A DNA stretch of 64,000 nt, taken from Diplonema japonicum (lineage: Eukaryota; Protista; Euglenozoa: Diplonemea). The notes beneath the pieces are model-generated. The model was not told where the DNA came from, did not search any database, and worked only from the letters and a program-made list of their open reading frames with translations. Numbering within the stretch: position 1 is the stretch's first letter; every line of letters starts with the position of its first letter. Shown here one piece after another: positions 37,220-55,461 of this stretch. Where the stretch lies: positions 744,001 through 808,000 of the forward strand of contig OZ025652.1 in NCBI GenBank assembly GCA_964019335.1, in the 5' to 3' direction. A program made the position numbers and the translations under genes.

Positions 37220-38017
37220 ATGGTGTTCTGTTCGTGCCATGTCGAGGGGTACCGTAAGGAAGGCGAAGGCCACGGGGACAACCCGCACATCGAACACGGC
37301 TACCGGTTGGGAATGAACAACTATTGGCGTGCTATGTCGTCTGTCTTTATGTGGCACAATGAAACCTTGAATATATGGTCGCATCTCATACCTGCGGCAT
37401 ATTGCTTGTGGATGCTGGTGTGGGAGAAGCAGGAAAACACTGCGGTATTCCTGACCTTGGCAAGCGGGATGATATGTCTCCTTATTAGTAGTTTGTATCA
37501 CACGTTCAAGTGCGTCTCGCAGAAGTCTTACGACTTGTGGCTGCGCTTTGATATCAGTTGTATCTTCCTCTCGCTCATCTCACAGATCTGCTGTGCCATC
37601 TTCCTGGGTTTCAAGTGCGACAAGTACGAACAGGCCTTTTACATTGCGAGCTTTGGGATCTCCGGTCTCACGATATTTGCAAAATTTATCTCAGATCCGA
37701 ACTTCGTGCCCGACGTGCAGCTTGTCATTCTAGTGGCCCTCACCTCTTTCTCCCTCGTGCACTGGGTGATGCTCAAAGGTGGCTTTTCGGACCCTTATAC
37801 ATGGCATTTCTTCACTCGTATCATAATACTCTACACCATTTACGCCTCGGGGATGTTCTTCTTTGTCACGAGACTCCCGGAGTCCCGATATCCTGGTAAA
37901 TTCGACATCGTCTGTTCCTCTCATCAGATTTGGCACTGCTTCATGGCGTGCGGCATGATCTGGGCTTACAATCTGGTTTTAGATTTTTCTACATTACGCG
38001 ACCCGCACTGTCGTTGA
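37220..38017 (+). CDS. PAQR/adiponectin-receptor (hemolysin III) family 7-TM protein
   Basis: HNETLNIWSH, SSLYHTF, D..CI and PE..YPGKFD..SSHQIWH zinc-site motifs. Confidence 0.93.
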   Translation: MVFCSCHVEGYRKEGEGHGDNPHIEHGYRLGMNNYWRAMSSVFMWHNETLNIWSHLIPAAYCLWMLVWEKQENTAVFLTLASGMICLLISSLYHTFKCVSQKSYDLWLRFDISCIFLSLISQICCAIFLGFKCDKYEQAFYIASFGISGLTIFAKFISDPNFVPDVQLVILVALTSFSLVHWVMLKGGFSDPYTWHFFTRIIILYTIYASGMFFFVTRLPESRYPGKFDIVCSSHQIWHCFMACGMIWAYNLVLDFSTLRDPHCR

Positions 38018-38127
38018 GGACTAACTTGTTCCCCCCATCAGTGATTTCTTCAACCCCCTTTAATGCAAAAAAAAAAAAAGAAAAAAAAAACTACTTACTT
38101 TTACAGCTTTTAGCACACTAAGAAACA

Positions 38128-38593
38128 ATGGGTAAGCCCCGTGGTATCAACACCGCTCGTAAGCTTAAGACGAGGAGGAGGACCCAGAAGTGGGCAGACA
38201 AGGACTGGAAGAAGGCGCACTTGTCGGTGTCGATCAAGGCTAACGTCTTCGGTGGATCTTCCCACGTGAAGGGAATTGTGCTGGAGAAGATCGGTGTTGA
38301 GGCCAAGCAGCCTAACTCCGCCATCCGTAAGTGCGTCCGTGTGCAGCTCATCAAGAACGGTAAGAAAATCCTTGCCTTCGTCCCCAACGACGGTTGCCTT
38401 CACTTCGTGGAGGAGAACGATGAAGTCCTTGTCGCTGGTCTCGGTAGGTCTGGGCACGCCGTCGGTGATATTCCGGGGGTCCGTTTCAAGATCAGCAAGG
38501 TATACCCCCAAACTATCAAAACACCACCTACAGGTCTCGGGTGTTGGTCTCTTCGCCTTGTACCGTGAGAAGAAGGAGAAGCCCCGTTCTTAG
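38128..38593 (+). CDS. RPS23: 40S ribosomal protein S23 (uS12); intron 38500-38533
   Basis: [26 protein letters not shown] and GDIPGVRFK. Splicing gives [20 protein letters not shown]. Confidence 0.98.
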
Positions 38594-38672
38594 ATAGGCT
38601 TTTTACCGATCACATTCTCTCTTAACACTTTTCAAACATCACCCCCTCCACAGGTTGTATGAACATGTTACA

Positions 38673-41600
38673 ATGCTGTCAACTCGATCACTTTTGATAT
38701 CCCTACTCGTACATGCTGTCTGTGTATTAGGTGTGTGCTATTTAATTGAGGGTGGAACATTTACAAAACCATTTCGCCTACATAGCCACAGTTTCTGTTC
38801 TCTTGAAAAAATATTTTGCTTGAAAAAACAATCGAACCAGTGTTCTGATGTTGGCAGGATGGGTTACTTGATAATGTCACGTACCTGCTTCTGGGCCACA
38901 CAGATCAACTAAACCAGCCCCGAGCCCGCAGACTGCTACAGTTCTTAATTCATCTTACTTTAGAGCCCGGCATTAGTACCAAATAATGTTTTTACCTCAA
39001 TATCTCACCGACACACCCACAGGCGCCCCACCTACTGCTCAACCGACATTCGCCCCGACACTAGTTCCAACCACCACCCCGTCAGCTGTACCAACAGCCA
39101 CTCCCACTGCTGTACCCACAAGTGCTCCAGCGACAGTGACTCCAACCACACCACCAACAGCTGTTCCCACACTTGTTCCTGGATCATCTGCCGTTCCAAC
39201 AGTCACACCAACTGATGTACCGACGGCACTGCCAACAGCAACACCTACAGCCACCCCCACTGCTGTACCCACAAGTGCTCCAGCGACAGTGACTCCAACA
39301 GGTGTCCCAACCACACCACCAACAGCTGTTCCCACACTCGTTCCTGGGTCATCAGCTGTTCCCACAGTCACACCAACCGATGTACCGACAGCTGTACCAA
39401 CCGCATCCCCCACCACTATGCCTACGGCTGCTCCTACAGCCACCCCAACTGACGTCCCCACCCTCACACCCGGGACTACGGCGACACCAACGAACGTTCC
39501 CACGTTGGCCCCGGGGACGACAGTAACCCCAACTGTATCTCCGACAGCAACACCTACAGCCACTCCCACAGCAGAGCCAACAGGTGCTCCAGTGACAACA
39601 CCTCCAACGGCTGTTCCCACATTTGTTCCAGGGAGCACTGCCATACCAACAACCACTCCCACTGCTGTACCCACAAGTGCTCCAGCGACAGTGACTCCAA
39701 CAGGTGTTCCAACCACACCACCAACAGCTGTTCCCACACTCGTTCCTGGGTCATCTGCCGTTCCAACAGTCACACCAACTGATGTACCGACGGCACTGCC
39801 AACAACAACACCAACAGCCACTCCCACAGCAGAGCCAACAGGCGCGCCACTGACAACATCTCCAACGGCTGTTCCCACACTTGTTCCTGGGAGCACTGCC
39901 ATGCCAACAGCCACTCCAACAGCTGAACCCACAAGTGCTCCAGCGACAGTGACTCCAACTGATGCTCCAACAGCATCTCCAACAGCTGTTCCCACACTTG
40001 TTCCAGGGAGCACTGCCATGCCAACAGCCATCCCCACTGCTGAACCAACAGCTGTTCCAACAGTCGCACCAACTGATGTACCGACAGCATTGCCAACAGC
40101 AACACCTACAGCAGAGCCAACAGACGCGCCACTGACAACATCTCCAACAGCTGTTCCCACACTCGTTCCTGGGTCATCAGCTGTTCCAACAGTCACACCA
40201 ACTGATGTACCAACGGCACTGCCAACAGCAACACCTACAGCCACTCCCACAGCAGAACCAACTGGGGCTCCACAGACAACAACTCCAACCGATGCTCCCA
40301 CGCTTGTTCCAGGGAGCACTGCCATACCAACAACCACTCCCACTGCTGTACCCACAAGTGCTCCAGCGACAGTGACTCCAACAGGTGTTCCAACTACACC
40401 ACCAACAGCTGTTCCCACACTTGTTCCTGGGTCATCAGCTGTTCCAACAGTCACACCAACCGATGTACCGACGGCACTGCCTACTACATCACCTACAGCC
40501 ACTCCCACAGCAGAGCCAACAGGTGCTCCACTGACAACACCTCCAACGGCTGTTCCCACACTTGTTCCAGGGAGCACTGCCATACCGACAATCACCCCCA
40601 CTGCTGAACCCACAAGTGCTCCAGCGACAGTGACTCCAACAGGTATCCCAACTGTTCCCACACTTGTTCCTGGGTCAACAGCTGTTCCAACAGTCGCACC
40701 AACTGATGTACCGACAGCATTGCCAACAGCAACACCTACAGCAGAGCCAACAGACGCGCCACTGACAACATCTCCAACAGCTGTTCCCACACTCGTTCCT
40801 GGGTCATCAGCCGTTCCAACAGTCACACCAACTGATGTACCGACGGCACTGCCAACAGCAACACCTACAGCCACTCCCACAGCAGAGCCAACAGACGCGC
40901 CACTGACAACATCTCCAACGGCTGTTCCCACATTTGTTCCAGGGAGCACTGCCATACCAACAACCACTCCCACTGCTGTACCCACAAGTGCTCCAGCGAC
41001 AGTGACTCCAACAGGTGTTCCAACAGCATCCCCAACAGCTGTTCCCACACTTGTTCCTGGGTCAACAGCTGTTCCAACAGTCGCACCAACTGATGTACCG
41101 ACAGCACTGCCAACAGCAACACCTACAGCCACTCCCACAGCAGAGCCAACCGATGCTCCAACGGCTGTTCCCACACTTGTTCCAGGGAGCACAGCTGTAC
41201 CGACAACCACTCCCACTGCTGTACCCACAAGTGCTCCGTCGACTGTAACTCCGACAGCTTTTCCTACTCTTGTTCCTGGCGCAACTGTAGTACCTACGGT
41301 TACACCAACCGATGCACCTACTGCTGTGCCAATTACACCTTCGGCTATTCCTACAGCCATTCCCACAGCAGAGCCGACAGGTGCTCCAACGACAACATCT
41401 CCAACAGCTGTTCCCACACTTGTTCCTGGGTCAACAGCTATCCCAACGATTGTACCAACTGATGTACCGACGGCACTGCCAACTACGGCACCTACAGCCA
41501 CTCCCACAGCGGAGCCAACCGATGCTCCAGCGACAACATCTCCAACGGCCATTTCCACACTCGTTCCAGGGAATACTGCTATGCCAACAATTACTCCCAC

Positions 41601-44600
41601 TGCTGTACCCACAGGTGCTCCGTCGACGGTGACTCCAACAGCTATTCCAACCACACCACCAACGGCTGTTCCCACACTTGTTCCAGGGAGCACTGCCATG
41701 CCGACAGCTACTCCCACTGCTGAACCCACAAGTGCTCCAGCAACAGTGACTCCAACAACCACACCACCAACAGGTGTTCCCACACTCGTTCCTGGATTAT
41801 CTACTGTTCCAACAGTCACACCAACTGATGTACCGACGGCACTGCCAACAGCAACACCTACAGCCACTCCCACAGCAGAGCCAACAGACGCGCCACTGAC
41901 AACATCTCCAACGGCTGTTCCCACATTTGTTCCAGGGAGCACTGCCATACCAACAACCACTCCCACTGCTGTACCCACAAGTGCTCCAGCGACAGTGACT
42001 CCAACAGGTGTTCCAACAGCATCCCCAACAGCTGTTCCCACACTTGTTCCTGGGTCAACAGCTGTTCCAACAGTCACACCAACTGATGTACCGACAGCAC
42101 TTCCGACAGCAACACCTACAGCCACTCCCACAGCAGAGCCAACAGGCACGCCACTGACAACATCTCCAACGGCTGTTCCCACACTTGTTCCAGGGAATAC
42201 TGCTTTGCCAACAACCACCCCGTCAGCTATGCCAACAACCACTCCCACTGTGGAACCCACAAGTGCTCCAGCGACAGTGACTCCAACCACACCACCAACA
42301 GCTGTTCCCACACTTGTTCCTGGGTCAACAGCTATTCCAACGATTGTACCAACCGATGTACCGACGGCACTGCCAACAGCATCACCTACAGCCACTCCCA
42401 CAGCAGAACCAACGGGTGTTCCGACATCCATGCCCATCGCTCCTACGACGGCTATTCCCACACTTATCCCCGGGAGTACTGCTGTACCAACAGCCACTCC
42501 CACCGCAGTGCCCACGAGTGCTCCAACAACAGTGTCTCCAACCACACTACCAACGGCTATCCCTACGGTTGCACCAACTGATGTACCGACGGCACTACCA
42601 ACAGTTGTTCCGACAAATCCACCAACGTTGACTCCAGGCACCACTGCAGTGCCTACAGCGCAGCCTACTTCTATCCCAACAGGTAAGGTCGAAGAGTGAA
42701 GAGAGAAAAAAAAAAAAAAAAAAAAAAACAGGATCAACAGCCACACCGACTTCGGTCCCTGCGAACAGCCCCACTAGTGTCCCGACATTGTCCCCTGGGA
42801 TAACAGCGACACCAACAGAAGTACCTACAGCCGTTCCAACTCTGACACCAGGTGTGCTTTTGGGAAATATACTAAATTGTTATCAAAATTAAAAGGTACA
42901 ACGGCCACACCGACAGCTGTACCAACCGCATCACCGACACACGTACCAGGCACCACTGCATCCCCCACCACTATACCTACGGCTGCTCCTACAGCCACCC
43001 CAACTGACGTCCCCACCCTCACACCCGGGACTACGGCGACACCAACGAACGTTCCCACGTTGGCCCCGGGGACGACAGTAACCCCAACTGTATCTCCGAC
43101 AGCAACACCTTCCTCAATACCAACAGCGAGCCCCACTGCTGGTCCTACACCGGTTCCTGGAACAGCAGTTCCGACCATCACTCCAACAGCGTCTCCAACA
43201 CAGATCCCCACGGATGCCCCCACTGCTGTTCCAACTAGCGTGCCGACGTTAGCACCTGGGTCAACTGCTGTTCCAACAGCGACCCCCACAGTGTCACCAA
43301 CAAGCATGCCAACCGCAACCCCTACTTCTGCACCTACTGGAATACCGACAACAGTACCCACTGCTGTCCCAACAACAGTACCCACTGCTGCTCCAACAAC
43401 AGCACCCACAACGACAGTGCCCACTGCTGTCCCAACGACAGTACCCACCGCTGTCCCGACTTTCACCCCAACGGCTATGCCGACTTTAAGTCCGAGGTCC
43501 ACTGCAGTACCAACCGTACCGACACTCAGCCCAGGAACAACATCAACACCTACAGCACTTCCTACAACCACACCGACGACTCTTAACCCCACTGCAACGG
43601 CAATACCTACGAGTCCACCGACAGCTATTCCCACCTCAGTGCCCACAGCCATGCCATCTGTTGCTCCTTCAACAGTAATTCCAACTAGTGCCCCAGTGAC
43701 ACCAACCTTTGCGCCCATCCAAAGCTGCGACTACAACGCATTTGATGCCCCTCGATTATCAAACTCAAACTGCAGCAACAATGTTGCAAATGGTATCGTT
43801 TGCAGCGTCAGCCATAGCAGTTTAGTGTGTGGGAACACAGAGTGTATTAATGGGAGGTGGTTGCCATCCAAAGTGACGTGTGACTGCTCATACAACTCGT
43901 TGTCGTCTGTAGCAGGTGCCGATGTCCATGGCAACGGTTGCATCGCAGGAGGTGTTGTGGTGGACAAGGGTGGGTGTGCTTATGTAAGAAATGGCTGGTC
44001 GTGCGGCAGTGTTGTGTGTGATTCGGGAGTATGGAACACTTCGCAATGGAGTGGCTACCCGACGTGCACACCCAACTCGTGCGCGTATGACGATCTAGTG
44101 CTGTCGGTGGGAGCAGGCAACGGCCTGAATGGGTGTGTGGCAGGCGGAACCGTTATTAGTGGTGGTGCTTGCGGTATCTCTCAGAAAGGCTACAGTTGCG
44201 AAGTTGTGACGTGCATCGAAGGGAGGTGGAATACAACAGCACCCTCGTGCACTCCCAAAAGTTGTGCATTTAATGCTCTAGCTGTGGTTGCTGGCATCAC
44301 TGCAGCAGGGAACGGTTGCAATAATGGAGGGGGTGTCACGAGCGGGAACTGGTGCTCATTCAGCCGCACGGGTTACACTTGCAGCAGTGTGGCGTGCTTT
44401 GCAGGCGCGTGGAACACTACAGGCCCGTCGTGCACAGCCAACGACTGCTTATTTACCGAAAGCCGACTGCCCATTCCAACTTCTGTGTCTCAGGATTGCA
44501 GGTTTGGCGACCAGGTCCGCAGCGGGGCTACATGTTCGTTCAGTGCTCACGGCCATGTGTGCAACGAGACTCAGTGCACTGCCGGTGAATGGGCGCTGCC

Positions 44601-48841: not shown

Positions 48842-50209
48842 ATGGCGAAGGTGTCACTGGATGACAATGCACGCATCCTGCACTCGCAGATCCTAGATAT
48901 AAAGAGCAAGCTCCTGTACAGGACGCAACACCCTTCCACCCATATCCCATGGGAGAGACCAGTGAGCATCGAGCCGCCAAGGTCCTCGTGTGATGCACGT
49001 AGTTTCAGTGAACGAGAAAGCTACATGAATAAAAGGGAGAGAGAGCTCCAGCAGCGTAAGGCGTCACTTTTCAAGGACCTCTCCACTCACGAGGAGCACG
49101 TTAGCAAGCAGGAGACCCGAACACCTGAAAGACAACAGCCGATACAAAAAAGACTTCAGGAGCGCAGCATACCCCGTAGTACACCCATCGTCTCTCATTC
49201 AGAGCAAGACGAGCCTACACTTGGTAGCAAACGTCAGGAGCGTCCTGAAGTACAGTTATTTGAAACGCAGCGAACGTTGGTAACAAAGGCCATCGCACCC
49301 CCACTGCCTCCCAAACCGCGTGTCATAGTCACCAGCAGTGTCGGCAGCATGGCAGTGTCGGCTGTGGAGCTTTTTGTAGCAGAGGCACCCCTTTTGGCGG
49401 TGTTCCCACAAGCACCTCGTAAGAGTGTCCAAACTGCAGCAGTTCAATGCACCATGCAAGAGGCCCCGAGCAAGCCTGAACAGTCCGATCGAAGCGAGTT
49501 CATGTTACCCAAGTTTTCACCTGATATACAGCAAGAGCCTGTCCAATCTGTGGCGCGAGCGGAATCAACCAAAGTAGACGCACCTCTTACACAGCCACCT
49601 GCCCTGGAGCAGGACGCACCTCTCAAAGTGCCTGAAGTTACTCCTTACCCAACACCTGATTCACATCCGGTGCAGACAGCTTCACAAGCACAAGCACAAG
49701 CCACTCCCCCACCTGCTTCTGTGGAAGAGGAAGAGACATGGGCAGCAATGGAAAAAGAAGCACTCCTCTCGGGCGAATGGCAGCAGCGAAAAGACAAAGC
49801 ATCGAACCGGAACTATTACTTACACAAAATCACCAAGCAGACCATATGGAACCTCAGGAAGCATTTCAAGGAAACTCGTAAACCAACTCTAGCTGCCGTC
49901 CCAGCACTGCCAGTTCCTTCTAACCCGCCCCCTAGCACGCCTGCTACTGAAAGTGACTTCTTCCCCACCAACTCAGCAGCCTCCATCCCTTCAGATGTCC
50001 AGAAAGAGCCATCGTCACCCCTGTTGCCCATCGAACCCACCAAAGAGCAAGTGGAAGACGAGATTGCACGCGTGATATCAAAAGGGATCTGGATCGAAAA
50101 GGCCAGCACCAAAGGAAAGTCTTACTATCTCAACAAGAAAGACAAACGGGTTTCGGATAAAACCGTCTGGGACCTCAGGGCCACCTTGAAGAAGGCCCTC
50201 ATGGCGTGA
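48842..50209 (+). CDS. Low-complexity Pro/Ser-rich protein with two WW-like domains
   Basis: W..RKDKASNRNYYLHKITKQTIW and W.EKASTKGKSYYLNK....KTVW, each followed by [N/D]LR. Confidence 0.75.
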   Translation: MAKVSLDDNARILHSQILDIKSKLLYRTQHPSTHIPWERPVSIEPPRSSCDARSFSERESYMNKRERELQQRKASLFKDLSTHEEHVSKQETRTPERQQPIQKRLQERSIPRSTPIVSHSEQDEPTLGSKRQERPEVQLFETQRTLVTKAIAPPLPPKPRVIVTSSVGSMAVSAVELFVAEAPLLAVFPQAPRKSVQTAAVQCTMQEAPSKPEQSDRSEFMLPKFSPDIQQEPVQSVARAESTKVDAPLTQPPALEQDAPLKVPEVTPYPTPDSHPVQTASQAQAQATPPPASVEEEETWAAMEKEALLSGEWQQRKDKASNRNYYLHKITKQTIWNLRKHFKETRKPTLAAVPALPVPSNPPPSTPATESDFFPTNSAASIPSDVQKEPSSPLLPIEPTKEQVEDEIARVISKGIWIEKASTKGKSYYLNKKDKRVSDKTVWDLRATLKKALMA

Positions 50210-50295: not shown

Positions 50296-50782
50296 ATGGG
50301 GAAGAGAAGGTCAAGAAAGGTTGCACCAAAGAAGGCAGCGGCGAAGCTCCCTACTTCGTTCGATTGTCCTTTCTGCAACCATATGAGTACTGTGACAGTG
50401 AAGCTGGTACAGAGCGCGAAAATTGGGAAACTGGAGTGCAGGGTGTGCGGAGTGAAGACGGAGACAACCATTACTCATTTGTCAAAAGAAGTGGATGTGT
50501 ATTGTGAATGGATGGACAGCTGTGTGGAACTCAACAGACAGGGCGACACAGCCGACCCTGCCCTTGATGACGAGGAGCTAGGGATAACACAAAGCAAAAG
50601 ACAACGAGGGGTAAGCACATCACCACACACACCACCACACTTCAGGACGACGATGTTGCAGCACTTCTCGAGCCTGACGGCAGCGACGGATCGCTTTATG
50701 ATAATTACCAAGACGGGCTACTCCCTTCAGATGTATGCACAAAAGCCACCTCACCATGTACTCACAGGAAGAAGTTGCATAG
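50296..50782 (+). CDS. ELF1: Transcription elongation factor Elf1, 3 exons; introns 50611-50645 and 50733-50767
   Basis: MGKRR...F.CPFCNH...C.VC...L...VDVY.EW.D.C zinc ribbon. Splicing gives an acidic tail ending EEVA*. Confidence 0.93.
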
Positions 50783-50882
50783 TTTTGCTTTTTGTTCAGT
50801 TGTTTCCCTGTCCTCAAATATTCAGTTCTTGCCCTTGTTGCCGCATAGGATCACCACAGCTGTATTTCGTTAAACTTTTAAA

Positions 50883-52285
50883 ATGTCTGACGCGAAGCAG
50901 GTTGAGAAGAAGGAGGGTGCCGAGAGGGCCGATGACAGAATCAACATCTCCAGCAACAAGGATGTTTTCTTCTACGTGGACCTTGCCAAGAAGCTCCTTG
51001 CTGACGCTGAAAGGCCTGATGTGCTTGAGCTGACCGGCCTTGGCTCCTCCATCTCCGTATGTTAAACAGAAACTGGGACCACCTTCACACAGACTGTTGT
51101 GTCCGTCGCTGACATCCTCCGTGAGCAGGACCTCGCCACCGTGAGCAAGCTCGAGACTGGCATGTCTGGCCGTACCAACCGCACTGCCAAGATCCAGGTA
51201 TGCATCATAGCGACAATAAGCAAACACGCCACAGTGCTGGGTCAAGAAGAACGCCGGCTTCGAGGAGGCTTACAAGAAGCAGCTCGAGGAGAAGGCCGCC
51301 AAGTTGAAGACCAGGGTTGAGTCCGCCAAGAACCAGGCCTTCGTCTTCATCAAGCCCCACGCCGTCACCGCCGACGTGAAGAAGCTCGTGAAGGAGACCC
51401 TTACCGCCAAGGGCGTCACCATCACCGGTGAGGGTTCCATCAAGGCCGAGACCATCGACAAGAAGAAGCTCATCGACCAGCACTACTACGCCATTGCCAG
51501 CAAGGCCACCATCCTTCAGCCGAAGGACCTGAACGTCCCCGCTGACAAGTTCAAGGGCCAGTTCGGTCTTGGTTGGGACGAGGCCCTCGAGAAGGGCTGC
51601 GTCTACAATGCCATGGATGCCTGCAAGAAGCTCGACCTTGACGCCGACGGTCTTGACACTGAGTGGGCCAAGGCTAAGAAGGCCGGCAAGCTTGTCAAAT
51701 TCGGTGGTGGCTTCTACTGCGGCCTGATCGAGATCGAGGGTAAGGAGCCTGCGTATGCAAAATTGAAATCCAATATTCACCTATGACAGTTACGTGTTCA
51801 ACGGCTTCTTCATGTCGATGAGGACCAAGTTCACCAAGCCCGGTCTGACCATCTACTACTACACTGTGGAGTGGGATGCCGCTGACTTGAAGTGGGCTGA
51901 CTTCCGTGGTAAGGTGCTCGGGCCCACTGACCCCGCTGAGGCCCCTGCTGACTCTCTCCGTGGTAAGGTGTTCTCCGACTGGGAGAAGCTTGGCCTCAGC
52001 GAAGTGCCCAACGTGGGTGACAACGGTGTGCACGCGTCTGCCTCGCCTTTCGAGGGTCTTGCTGAGAGGATGAACTGGCTCAGCGAGTCCGTGGACAGGA
52101 ACGCCTTCGGCAAGATCCTGACCGCCTCCAGCATCCCCAGGAAGGTCATCAAGGAGTGGAGCGTGGACCCCCAGGTGAACCTCGGTGACAAGAAGGGCTC
52201 CCTCTTCGACTCTGTCGAGGACCTTGACGCTGCTGAATGTGTTGACAAGCTTGTGAAGCTCGCCAACCTCAACAAGGAGGAGTAG
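50883..52285 (+). CDS. Alba-domain / nucleoside diphosphate kinase fusion protein (430 aa), 4 exons; introns 51057-51092, 51198-51234, 51753-51789
   Basis: Alba part: RINISSNKDVFFYVDLAKK..LELTGLGSSISTVVSVADIL..KLET..AKIQCWVKK. NDPK part: AFVFIKPH, LIDQHY, W.DFRGKVLG.TDP..AP..SLRG, NGVHAS. All three introns are GTATG..ACAG and keep frame. Confidence 0.9.
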
Positions 52286-52723
52286 ACCGTGCCTTTCATT
52301 GCGTTCCATTACAATTTTATAACATTTTTTAAGGATTTTTTCCGGGGTTTTTTTTATCTCTTTGCCTCTGATGAAAGTGTGATTTTTTTACTCCCCCCCC
52401 CTTTTTCTTGTTGCTCAAAAAATACTGGGAAAAAAAATGTCCCCCTTTTTTTTTTGCTCCCTCTGCTTTGTTTTCTTTTCTTTTTCTTTTTACCGACGGT
52501 AACGATCCCAATCCCCCTCAGGTCACTCAAAGGTTTTCTCCATTAGTAAGGGAGGAGGCATGAAGCAGCAGAAGAAAAGTACGATAGTGGATGGCCTTTC
52601 GCACCCCCCCCTTTTTTTTCTTTCTTCCCACCACCATGCTTTTAAATTTTTCACCCACTCCCTACTTTTCTTTGCTTTTCGTTAATATTTCCTAAGAAAT
52701 TTTAAGAAGGTTCAGGGTGCAAG

Positions 52724-55461
52724 ATGAAGGTAAGTTTGTTGGCCTTGCTTGCCGTGGCTGTGGTGTTATTGGCCGTTCAGATATGCTGTTGTGTGTTAGC
52801 ACTAGCAAACGAGGCAGAATCATATGTGGTGGCTGGCTTGCTGTGTGGATGTGTGATGGGGGCCATGCTGATCAGCAGTCTGGGAGGGTTGTTGCGGTTC
52901 TTTTCTGATCTGTCTAATGATTTGAAGAACTTGTGCAGCATGAAGACAAGCGAGCTACACGTGGAGGCACGCCCACCCCCCAAGATCAGCGAGTTGCGCA
53001 ACCTGAATGAACAGTTACTGAAGCTTGTTGTCAGTCTCCGCGAGACACGTCCCTTCATCCCTGCTTATGTGTTGGATGCCATGACCGAAGGTGATGAAGT
53101 TCCATCCCCACGTTCTTGCGACGGAGATAAAGGTGTTGACTCGCCAATCAGCCTTGAGGGCGTCCCTATGATCTCCATCACCCCCGTACCCAGTCCAGCC
53201 GCTGCCAAAAGCAACTCCAAAGGCCGCTTTGGTCTCAGCCTTAGCACCGCAGATATCGACACGCACAGCATCGACTTCGATGTGTCTGTTGCCTCCATGG
53301 AATCGGCTGCTGTCCCGAAGTCTGTCCGTGTACAGTCACCCCTGTCTAAGCAACTGCTCGAGAACCAGTTTCCACCCGGTGCTGCCCACAAGTCATTCTC
53401 AGGTTTTGTTGCCACCAACAATGACACCTCCTGCACATTCAGGCGGAGCAGCACATCCAATGCCCTCAATCAGCTAAGAAGGACCTCGCAGCCACTGGTG
53501 AATGCTAACATCGGAAACGATGTAAAAGCCAAGAAAGGCCATGCCTTGATGGCATGCATGAAGCGCCGAAAGGGCACGCTGCTTTCGGTGGAGTATGGCA
53601 TCATGGAGCTCGCCAATGACAACACTGCTGACACCTATGAGTTGGCCGCATCGCTGGTGTCGTCGGCGCTGGACATCATTCACGCAGAGGGTGGCAACGT
53701 CGTGCAGCTGACAGCAAACTATATTTTAGCTGCGTGGAATACCCACCACCCTTGCACAAGACATTCTTGGAATGCTTGCAAAGTTGCGGTAGAGCTGAAG
53801 AACTTCATGGAGTCCATGACCGATGACGGTGAGACGAGCATCGCGTGGTCAGTGGCTGTGACAACAGGCTTTTTGTACTATGGCAGCATTGGGAATGAAA
53901 AACACAAATCAGCTTTCGTGTTAGGTTCCATCACCGACCATGTGAAGCAGCTGAACAACCTGTCGAGACACCTGCGGGTGCCCGTTATAATCACAGAAGC
54001 AGTGCAGGAGGTACGAGTGTGAATAATACCAAACATCACAACAGGTGGTGCACAACCTGCTGGCCTGCCGTCCTGTCGACGTGGTGCTGTGGTTCGATGA
54101 TATCATGAGCAAATCAGTGAGAGAGATCATCTACGAGGTATGATGCACACTGCACTGCACACATGAAGGTTGTCGATAACATGCCAGTGGACCCAACGCT
54201 GTGGAAGGAGGCCTTCACAGGGTTTGTGAGCGGCGCTTTTAATGATTCTGATGCCAAGATATCTACATTGATGCAAAAGACGAGTAGCGACAGGCAGCTC
54301 AGCAGGTTGGCTTCTCTTGTCGCAAATGCAAAGGCGAAAACACTGAATATTCCAGAGCCGTATGTCAGAAGAATGGTTGGGTGGGAGAGTTGGGAAGTGG
54401 AACAGAGCTTCGAGAAGAAATTCCTCTCTGGCAGTCTTGAGAAGTACAAGACACGGTCAACTAGGAGGAGCACATCGTATTCTGCAAACTCAACGCATTC
54501 AGAAGACCTCAAATTGGCGATAGAGCTGACGCAGCGTGACAAGTCTGACAACTCTGATAGTGACACATGCTCCACAGCACACAGCGAAGACGAAGATACA
54601 CCACCTGAGAGATTCAAAGACACAGACGGCTCGGAGTGGAGACGGAGCGCAAAGCAGCTGGGAAATGGAGCCTTTGGTGATGTGTGGTTGGGAATGTCAG
54701 AAGATGGATCTCTAGTAGCGCTGAAATGCATGAAGGTTCCACCCCCTGTTGCTGCAGCCAGGAGACTCAGCCGTGTTTCCTCGCCCCTGCACGACACAGT
54801 GTCATCGGCAGTGAAGGAAGTAGAAATCCTGTCAAAGTACAAAGACGAGTCTATCGTGTGCTTTATCTCGTGTGGTGTGTTCGGGAAGAACATTATTGTG
54901 GTCATGGAATATGTAAGCGGTGGATCCCTTGCATCTATCCTAGATCAATTCGGGTCTGTGCCTTCTGCAACAGCGAGAAGATACACCAAAGACATCCTGA
55001 GGGGTTTGCTGTACTTGCACTCTAACGACATTATACACGTCGACCTTAAGCCTGCCAATGTGCTGCTGCACACTGACGGGCAGTGCAAGTTAAGCGACTT
55101 CGGGACGTGCAAGGTACTGACAGCAATTGGGAAACAAGCCGCTGAGAGCAAGGGGACACCCATGTATATGGCGCCAGAAGCTTGCAGGGGACAGGTATCT
55201 AAGGCTAGCGACGTATGGTCGTTGGGGCACACAGTGATAGCAATGTTGGCAGGTGTGTCGCCGTTTGAGTGGACGGAAGAGGTGCCCAAAGGCCCTCACC
55301 TCTTTATGAGGTGGCTTTGCAGAATGGAAGGAGATGTGCCCCTCCCACCTGCATCACTCATTGGTGAGCAGGGGCTGGGCTTTGTCGTCAAGTTACTCCG
55401 TCGCAACCCTGCACACCGCCCGTCCGTCGACCAGCTTGTCTATGACTCCTTTGTCTTGTAG
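52724..55461 (+). CDS. Membrane protein with HAMP-like linker, degenerate class III cyclase domain and STE11/MAP3K-like kinase, 3 exons; introns 54011-54044 and 54138-54168
   Basis: Two N-terminal hydrophobic helices. Cyclase-like segment IIHAEGGNVVQL....ILAAWN..H...AC..A...VTTG..YYGSIG....VLG. Kinase motifs GNGAFG, VALK, MEYVSGGSL, HVDLKPAN, DFG, GTPMYMAPE. Confidence 0.85.

Follow-up and report, generated by a model that had tools for sequence, protein, structure and literature searches.

Gene structure and neighborhood

The window, that is, the whole stretch of DNA analyzed here, comprises 64,000 nucleotides of the Diplonema japonicum genome (contig OZ025652.1, positions 744,001 to 808,000), and positions below are counted from its first letter. 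A gene of four exons lies at 50883-52285 on the forward (+) strand, together with all the features described for it. Its predicted product has 430 aa, a mass of 47 kDa and two domains. The N-terminal part is an Alba domain (50928-51255, residues 16-100), broken by introns 1 and 2. The C-terminal part is a long-form nucleoside diphosphate kinase (NDK)-like domain (51328-52090, residues 125-366), broken by intron 3.

Exon 1 (50883-51056) encodes residues 1-58, which comprise a disordered N-terminus and the first half of the Alba domain. Exon 2 (51093-51197) encodes residues 59-93, the second half of the Alba domain with helix 2 and the β-hairpin. Exon 3 (51235-51752, residues 94-265 plus 2 nt) carries the last Alba strand, a linker helix (residues 102-122, 51259-51321), the first NDK strand with Lys133, the HY motif, and most of an insertion of ~90 aa. 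Exon 4 (51790-52285) encodes residues 266-430 and the TAG stop codon; it contains the remaining NDK core, an extended Kpn-type loop, the putative catalytic His347 (codon 52031-52033), and a C-terminal extension of 64 aa (residues 367-430, 52091-52282). Intron 1 (51057-51092) is 36 nt long, and intron 2 (51198-51234) and intron 3 (51753-51789, phase 2) are 37 nt long; all three begin with GTATG and end with CAG. Published introns of D. japonicum have a median length of 41 nt, the 5' splice site (G)/GTATG and the 3' end CAG (PMC12621601), and the three predicted introns are typical of this pattern.

The junction between the Alba and NDK-like domains falls within exon 3. This exon contains no stop codon, and no Met upstream of the NAMDAC segment (residue 218), so a product consisting of the NDK-like domain alone would miss Lys133. 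The GC3 of the gene was 0.81; most of the remaining long ORFs of the window had values of 0.53-0.68. This agrees with the C/G-ending codon use described in the original prediction. The high GC3 suggests that the gene may be strongly expressed, and the term "abundant", which had been applied to its product, is a reading of this codon bias.

The upstream neighbor (50296-50810, +) encodes an Elf1/ELOF1 zinc-ribbon transcription elongation factor (Pfam, 96.9 bits). An intron of 35-36 nt near 50732-50767 is spliced out of this gene in transcript contigs of runs X1 and X3, and there is probably a second intron at ~50609-50645. The flanking ORFs encode a 455-aa protein with a WW domain (48842-50206, +) and a 432-aa protein that has a hydrophobic segment at its N-terminus and matches no Pfam family (52724-54022, +). 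Nearly all long ORFs of the window share the + strand, an arrangement known from the unidirectional gene clusters of Euglenozoa. The region 38001-44000 has a strong negative GC skew (-0.26 to -0.37) and ORFs of >1100 aa on both strands with a GC3 of only 0.29; it resembles a repeat or low-complexity region of biased composition.

Transcript evidence

Logan contigs from four sequencing runs were aligned to 50700-52500, two of which (X1 and X3) belong to different studies. The cDNA-type contigs of X1 and X3 skipped all three introns exactly, with joints at 51056>51093, 51194>51232 (shiftable by 3 nt and thus the same as 51197>51235), and 51752>51790. A contig from X4, a more divergent relative, also skipped intron 2. 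The contig of the DNA run X17 was collinear with the genome and had no joints. A single X1 contig of 1693 nt covers 50859-52457, including both domains; the joining of the two domains in one transcript had been proposed as a check on the fusion.

The X1 and X3 contigs begin with letters that do not match the genome and that end, directly before 50859, in …CAGTTTCTGTACTTTATT; we take these letters to be a spliced leader (SL) of the diplonemid/kinetoplastid type. The mRNA is therefore trans-spliced at the AG at 50858-50859. The acceptor and 5'UTR occupy 50858-50882, the 5'UTR is 23 nt long, and 50883 is the start of the first ATG. The contigs showed no SL joined at an internal site, although minor isoforms could escape this type of data. 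At the other end, the cDNA-type contigs of X1 and X3 stop at 52454-52457, at a repeat, and the 3'UTR (52286-52457) reaches at least 52457. The RNA-type contigs of X1 and X3 have a 4-nt insertion (ATTT) inside the stop codon at 52283-52285, which changes TAG to TAA, and several homopolymer-length differences from the genome in the T/C-rich 3'UTR (52286-52460). These differences look like strain or allelic variation and leave the protein unchanged.

The protein P0176 (EukProt EP01064, D. japonicum transcriptome, 430 aa) is the spliced product, exon by exon. The exon translations are exact substrings of P0176 at residues 1-58, 59-93, 94-265, and 267-430, and the codon split by intron 3 (GC|T) gives Ala266. 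P0176 was used as the query in whole-protein analyses, and the exons were also searched singly. The contigs and P0176 confirm the assembly of four fragments through three introns into 430 aa, as well as the earlier statement that the junction is not a splicing artefact. The data demonstrate that 50883-52285 (+) is a genuine, transcribed, SL-trans-spliced four-exon gene of D. japonicum.

Alba domain

The Alba identity was borne out by the Pfam profile PF01918, which matched residues 20-77 of P0176 with 39.2 bits (gathering cut-off 25, E 5.9e-10); exon 1 alone reached 24.2 bits (E 3e-5). The top PDB sequence matches of this part were T. brucei ALBA1 (7dl8), rice Alba1 (9mcd), and At2g34160 (1vm0), with E-values of ~1e-7 to 1e-8 for the single protein and down to 8e-12 for a profile of eight orthologues.

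AF2 models were built from 8 sequences (pLDDT 82.5) and from 40 sequences (pLDDT 89.4, pTM 0.80). The Alba core (residues 21-80) had a pLDDT of 84-95, and the modeled chain follows the IF3-C-like β-α-β-α-β-β fold of Alba proteins. Model residues 14-128 superposed on 7dl8 with a VIA-align Z of 16.1 and an rmsd of 2.4 Å over 112 residues. This superposition takes in the post-core helix, which is the linker helix in the fusion. The Z values were 14.8 against 1vm0 and 12.3 against archaeal Mja10b, and Foldseek gave TM values of 0.76-0.83 for the Alba part. Since the best PDB matches are T. brucei ALBA1 and the plant short Albas, and RPP20/Pop7 reach only Z ~10, the N-terminal part is assigned, from its sequence and predicted fold, to the ALBA1/2 type (short, Rpp20-like) rather than the RGG-tailed ALBA3/4 type. 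It has no RGG tail. The domain has a net charge of 0 and a pI of 6.4, and its Rhynchopus counterpart is acidic, which makes strong direct binding of nucleic acids by this domain doubtful.

Other Alba genes are present in the same genome. Two tandem short ALBA1/2-like genes (G000:C26:350125-354548, L013/L014) show 37-39% identity, and two tandem RGG-tailed ALBA3/4-like genes lie at G000:C64:34943-39418 (L001/L002). Both pairs are bordered by long A/T homopolymer tracts.

NDK-like domain and its family

The Pfam profile PF00334 scored 25.8 bits for P0176 against a cut-off of 27, and the match was split in two by the insertion. The orthologues P0009, P0174, and P0182 scored 30.9, 29.2, and 28.4 bits, respectively. 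The model of residues 125-366 superposed on S. aureus NDK (3q83) with Z 12.0 and an rmsd of 2.1 Å over 134 of 149 residues, on Pyrobaculum NDK (1xqi) with Z 11.8, and on mimivirus NDK with Z 10.7. Over these residues the model has the α/β-sandwich fold of NDKs. The sequence of the domain has diverged strongly from canonical NDKs, and its PDB E-values were only 1e-4 to 0.02.

The NGVHAS motif around His347 is intact, as the original prediction stated, and the domain is extended, as it also stated. The NDK core measures 242 aa, including a helical/β insertion of ~90 aa after the HY helix (~residues 178-265), and is followed by the 64-aa extension; the Kpn-type loop is ~11 residues longer than in canonical NDKs. 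Because of the insertion and the extension, we assign the domain to a long-form subfamily and not to the canonical group I NDKs, which are compact (~150 aa). The fusion protein does not have the compact single-domain form of these group I enzymes (hexamer/tetramer).

Ten residues (K133, H176, Y177, R305, T312, R323, N344, H347, S349, and E358) were invariant in 40 sequences. Alignments to 1xqi and 3vvt cover the His, Thr, and Arg motifs and the K-P strand. The domain thus appears to keep a putative whole canonical catalytic set, namely Lys133, Tyr177, Arg305, Thr312, Arg323, Asn344, His347, Ser349, and Glu358, in which Tyr177, Arg305, and Glu358 are assigned by motif reading. This residue pattern fits a potentially active phosphotransferase.

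D. japonicum also has a stand-alone long NDK on another contig (C90), with 62% identity. An exhaustive HMMER search with exon 3 found at least 1,280 cluster representatives of the long-NDK family at E ≤ 1e-3. The labeled members are from marine protists, including dinoflagellates, a euglenid and, by Atlas taxon labels, diatoms. The module often occurs as 2-7 tandem copies in one polypeptide. In P0002 and P0003, seven stretches matched it, and the diplonemid Lacrimia has a two-module long NDK of 737 aa. P0002, P0003, P0031, and P0113 are giant members with lengths of up to 2,595 aa, and in some of them six or seven modules were matched. Elsewhere the long NDK is fused to an EF-hand, a PH domain, or an Ssb-like OB fold, the last in approximately nine protein clusters. 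In the literature searched, we found no paper on the long-form NDK and no published activity for any member.

Distant bacterial relatives with 30% identity were found in Margulisbacteria MAGs (L015-L017). They have 302 aa, as at L017:3022-3930, and align over their full length. These relatives keep N-G-V-H-A-S-A-S-P-F-E and do not have the T-D-P…L-R-G segment; one of them adjoins a ychF-like GTPase gene on a 323-kb contig.

Distribution of the fusion

The Alba-NDK fusion was found with the same junction in the transcriptomes of six named diplonemid species. Four belong to Diplonemidae (Flectonema neradi, Rhynchopus euleeides, D. ambulator, and D. japonicum) and two to Hemistasiidae (Namystynia karyoxenos and Artemidia motanka). 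Two further diplonemid-like ENA assemblies carry the fusion under broken gene calls. The call P0182 in one of them does not include exon 1, and in the other the calls P0198/P0267 and P0266 break near intron 3. Since automatic calls truncate or split the orthologue, genome-based annotation would overlook the fusion.

Among the best 150 of at least 1,280 exon-3 HMMER matches, the Alba end was covered only by the diplonemid representative. An Alba HMM run against 268 retrieved proteins matched only the diplonemid fusions. When residues 1-125 were used in a word-based search, all matches were from Diplonemidae; even the known hemistasiid orthologues escaped it, which makes its negative result outside diplonemids weak. 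In the ESM Atlas, the kinase part matched only clusters of "hypothetical protein", and the Alba part matched nothing. These results show that the fusion is conserved across Diplonemea, and none was found in other lineages within the limited sensitivity of the searches. In a tree of NDK modules, the diplonemid sequences were placed together near one side. The fusions were not recovered as one clade (three changes, on weak branches), but the starred branches permit a single origin.

The original prediction regarded the architecture as undescribed. This holds for the literature searched, where no description of an Alba-NDK fusion was found; however, the fusion proteins are already public in EukProt transcriptomes with the automatic Pfam labels PF01918 and PF00334. 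Text matches to "Alba" in diplonemid papers were due to the author name Albanaz and not to the protein. The fusion is apparently a new architecture of known domains, shared by diplonemids.

Possible function of the fusion

ALBA proteins are central to the regulation of mRNA fate in trypanosomatids, apicomplexans, and plants, by mechanisms that are still vague, and there are repeated reports of NDKs close to ribosomes and nucleic acids for reasons that are not clear. We believe, with slightly better than even confidence, that the Alba domain places an NDP kinase on cytoplasmic mRNPs or ribosomes. In such a mechanism, the kinase would transfer the γ-phosphate of ATP to NDPs through phospho-His347. 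The Alba domain would bind RNA, form dimers (with a second copy of itself or with the RGG-tailed ALBA3/4-like proteins that D. japonicum also encodes), or do both, and these contacts would put kinase activity on cytoplasmic mRNPs or translating ribosomes. The outcome may be local regeneration of GTP/NTP, or a coupling of mRNP behavior to nucleotide status. The genome offers possible Alba partners in the RGG-tailed genes on C64 and the short Alba genes on C26.

Several observations lead us to propose recruitment to mRNPs: the role of kinetoplastid ALBAs, a co-purification in Leishmania, the fusion of the long NDK to an OB fold, and the GC3 of 0.81. Kinetoplastid ALBAs are reported as cytoplasmic, translation-associated, and RNA-binding (Mani et al. 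2011 and Dupé et al. 2015, cited in PMC13067578). In Leishmania, ALBA1, ALBA3, and the canonical NDPKb co-precipitate with eIF4G3/eIF4G4 (PMC13067578), a result that concerns a canonical NDK, which is an abundant protein. The long NDK behaves as a mobile module that is joined elsewhere to localizing or sensing domains (EF-hand, PH, and OB). Overall, an mRNP-tethered NTP supply appears plausible. The neutral charge of Alba weakens the case for it.

That same neutral to acidic Alba domain would suit a simpler arrangement, in which Alba is a mere dimerization or oligomerization scaffold for the kinase and has no role related to RNA. Tight dimers are typical of Alba domains, and multiple modules seem to benefit the long NDK, as the 2-7 tandem modules of other lineages and the two-module form of Lacrimia suggest. 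The ~90-aa insertion and the extended loop also change regions that we take to be the oligomer contacts of canonical NDKs. However, the stand-alone long NDK in the same genome has no such scaffold, the separate fusion of a long NDK to an Ssb-like OB fold suggests nucleic acids, and this Alba type has its nearest relatives among the mRNP proteins of kinetoplastids. We consider the scaffold reading unlikely, at about one chance in five. Somewhat less probable still is that the NDK-like domain acts on Alba-mRNPs as a regulatory module (a protein histidine kinase, a nucleotide sensor, or another phosphotransferase) and not as a bulk NDP kinase. The strong divergence of the domain (PDB E-values of 1e-4 to 0.02) and its large insertion and C-terminal extension would favor such a role, and several multidomain NDK proteins, such as flagellar NDK5, behave non-canonically (PMC5662260). 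Yet the candidate nucleotide-binding and catalytic residues are invariant over the 40 sequences, as expected under selection for canonical chemistry.

A nuclear kinase carried by an Alba domain of the RNase P/MRP (Rpp20/Pop7-like) or chromatin-associated kind is very improbable. The Alba part can be superposed on RPP20 of humans (Z 10.8), Pop7 of yeast (Z 10.3), and archaeal chromatin Albas (Z ~12), but T. brucei ALBA1 (Z 16.1) and At2g34160 (Z 14.8) fit it distinctly better, in superpositions that also take in the C-terminal helix, and inspection of the N-terminus by eye revealed no obvious nuclear localization signal. As for an annotation or assembly artefact, or read-through of neighboring genes, the truncated and split gene calls on two other assemblies could be taken to favor it. 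We reject it as next to impossible, because the junction lies in one exon, an SL-bearing contig spans both domains, and six species agree.

Placement of the kinase on cytoplasmic mRNPs by the Alba domain remains our preferred reading. A broader and much more speculative idea, which we hold to be improbable, treats the fusion as a "Rosetta stone". ALBA mRNPs and NDP kinase would then form one functional unit across Euglenozoa, present as separate proteins in kinetoplastids, and local GTP/NTP regeneration or phospho-His signaling would be integral to translational control by ALBA, with the long-NDK family as a nucleic-acid-associated kinase module. If this is true, GTP/NTP regeneration or phospho-His signaling is an unrecognized component of ALBA-mediated translational control, and the long-NDK family of marine protists is a kinase module associated with nucleic acids. 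The conserved covalent fusion offers a testable link between nucleotide supply and mRNP function. Diplonemids are abundant marine protists and include a genetically tractable relative, and the fusion points to a large unstudied family of long-form NDKs that are often tandem or fused to EF-hand, PH, or OB domains.

Comparison with known systems

The Alba part resembles T. brucei ALBA1/ALBA2 (7dl8) and the plant short Albas (1vm0 and 9mcd), with 28-35% identity and Z values of 14.8-16.1. The fusion and the short Albas have in common the GLGxxI…V…A(D/E)IL helix, a post-core C-terminal F..Y..Q helix, and the absence of an RGG tail. The short Albas stop after the C-terminal helix, whereas in the fusion this helix runs on into a kinase domain of 300 aa.

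The kinase part has the same fold as the canonical NDKs of ~150 aa (NME1-4, T. brucei NDPK 4fkx, and S. aureus 3q83) and keeps their K-P, H-Y, T-x-P, R-G, and N-x-x-H-x-S…E motifs. Unlike them, it has the ~90-aa insertion, a longer Kpn-type loop, and the 64-aa extension, and its Pfam scores are at or below the cut-off. Across the extended loop and the His motif, the NDK of Pyrobaculum aerophilum (1xqi), which has insertions too, matched the fusion best in sequence. However, 1xqi is an archaeal single-domain protein of 195 aa, and its insertions are not homologous in extent to those of the fusion.

The NDK-fold chains of cilia (7jrj_K of the Chlamydomonas radial spoke, and 9e78, 9e2g, and 6u42 of the microtubule doublet) superposed with Z 11-13. 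The multidomain ciliary NDKs (NME5/7/8/9) share with the fusion the principle of an NDK fold tethered to a cellular structure. They are tethered via DM10, Dpy-30, or thioredoxin domains, and some are catalytically inactive. In contrast to the fusion, the ciliary NDK-fold proteins are axonemal and none has an Alba domain. A further parallel is provided by the long-NDK proteins with an Ssb-like OB fold from metatranscriptomes of marine protists (P0160-P0167 and P0172), which contain the same module with 51-58% identity. These proteins have two kinase modules and a C-terminal OB fold, whereas the fusion has an N-terminal Alba domain, and the joining of the long NDK to the OB fold is independent of its joining to Alba.
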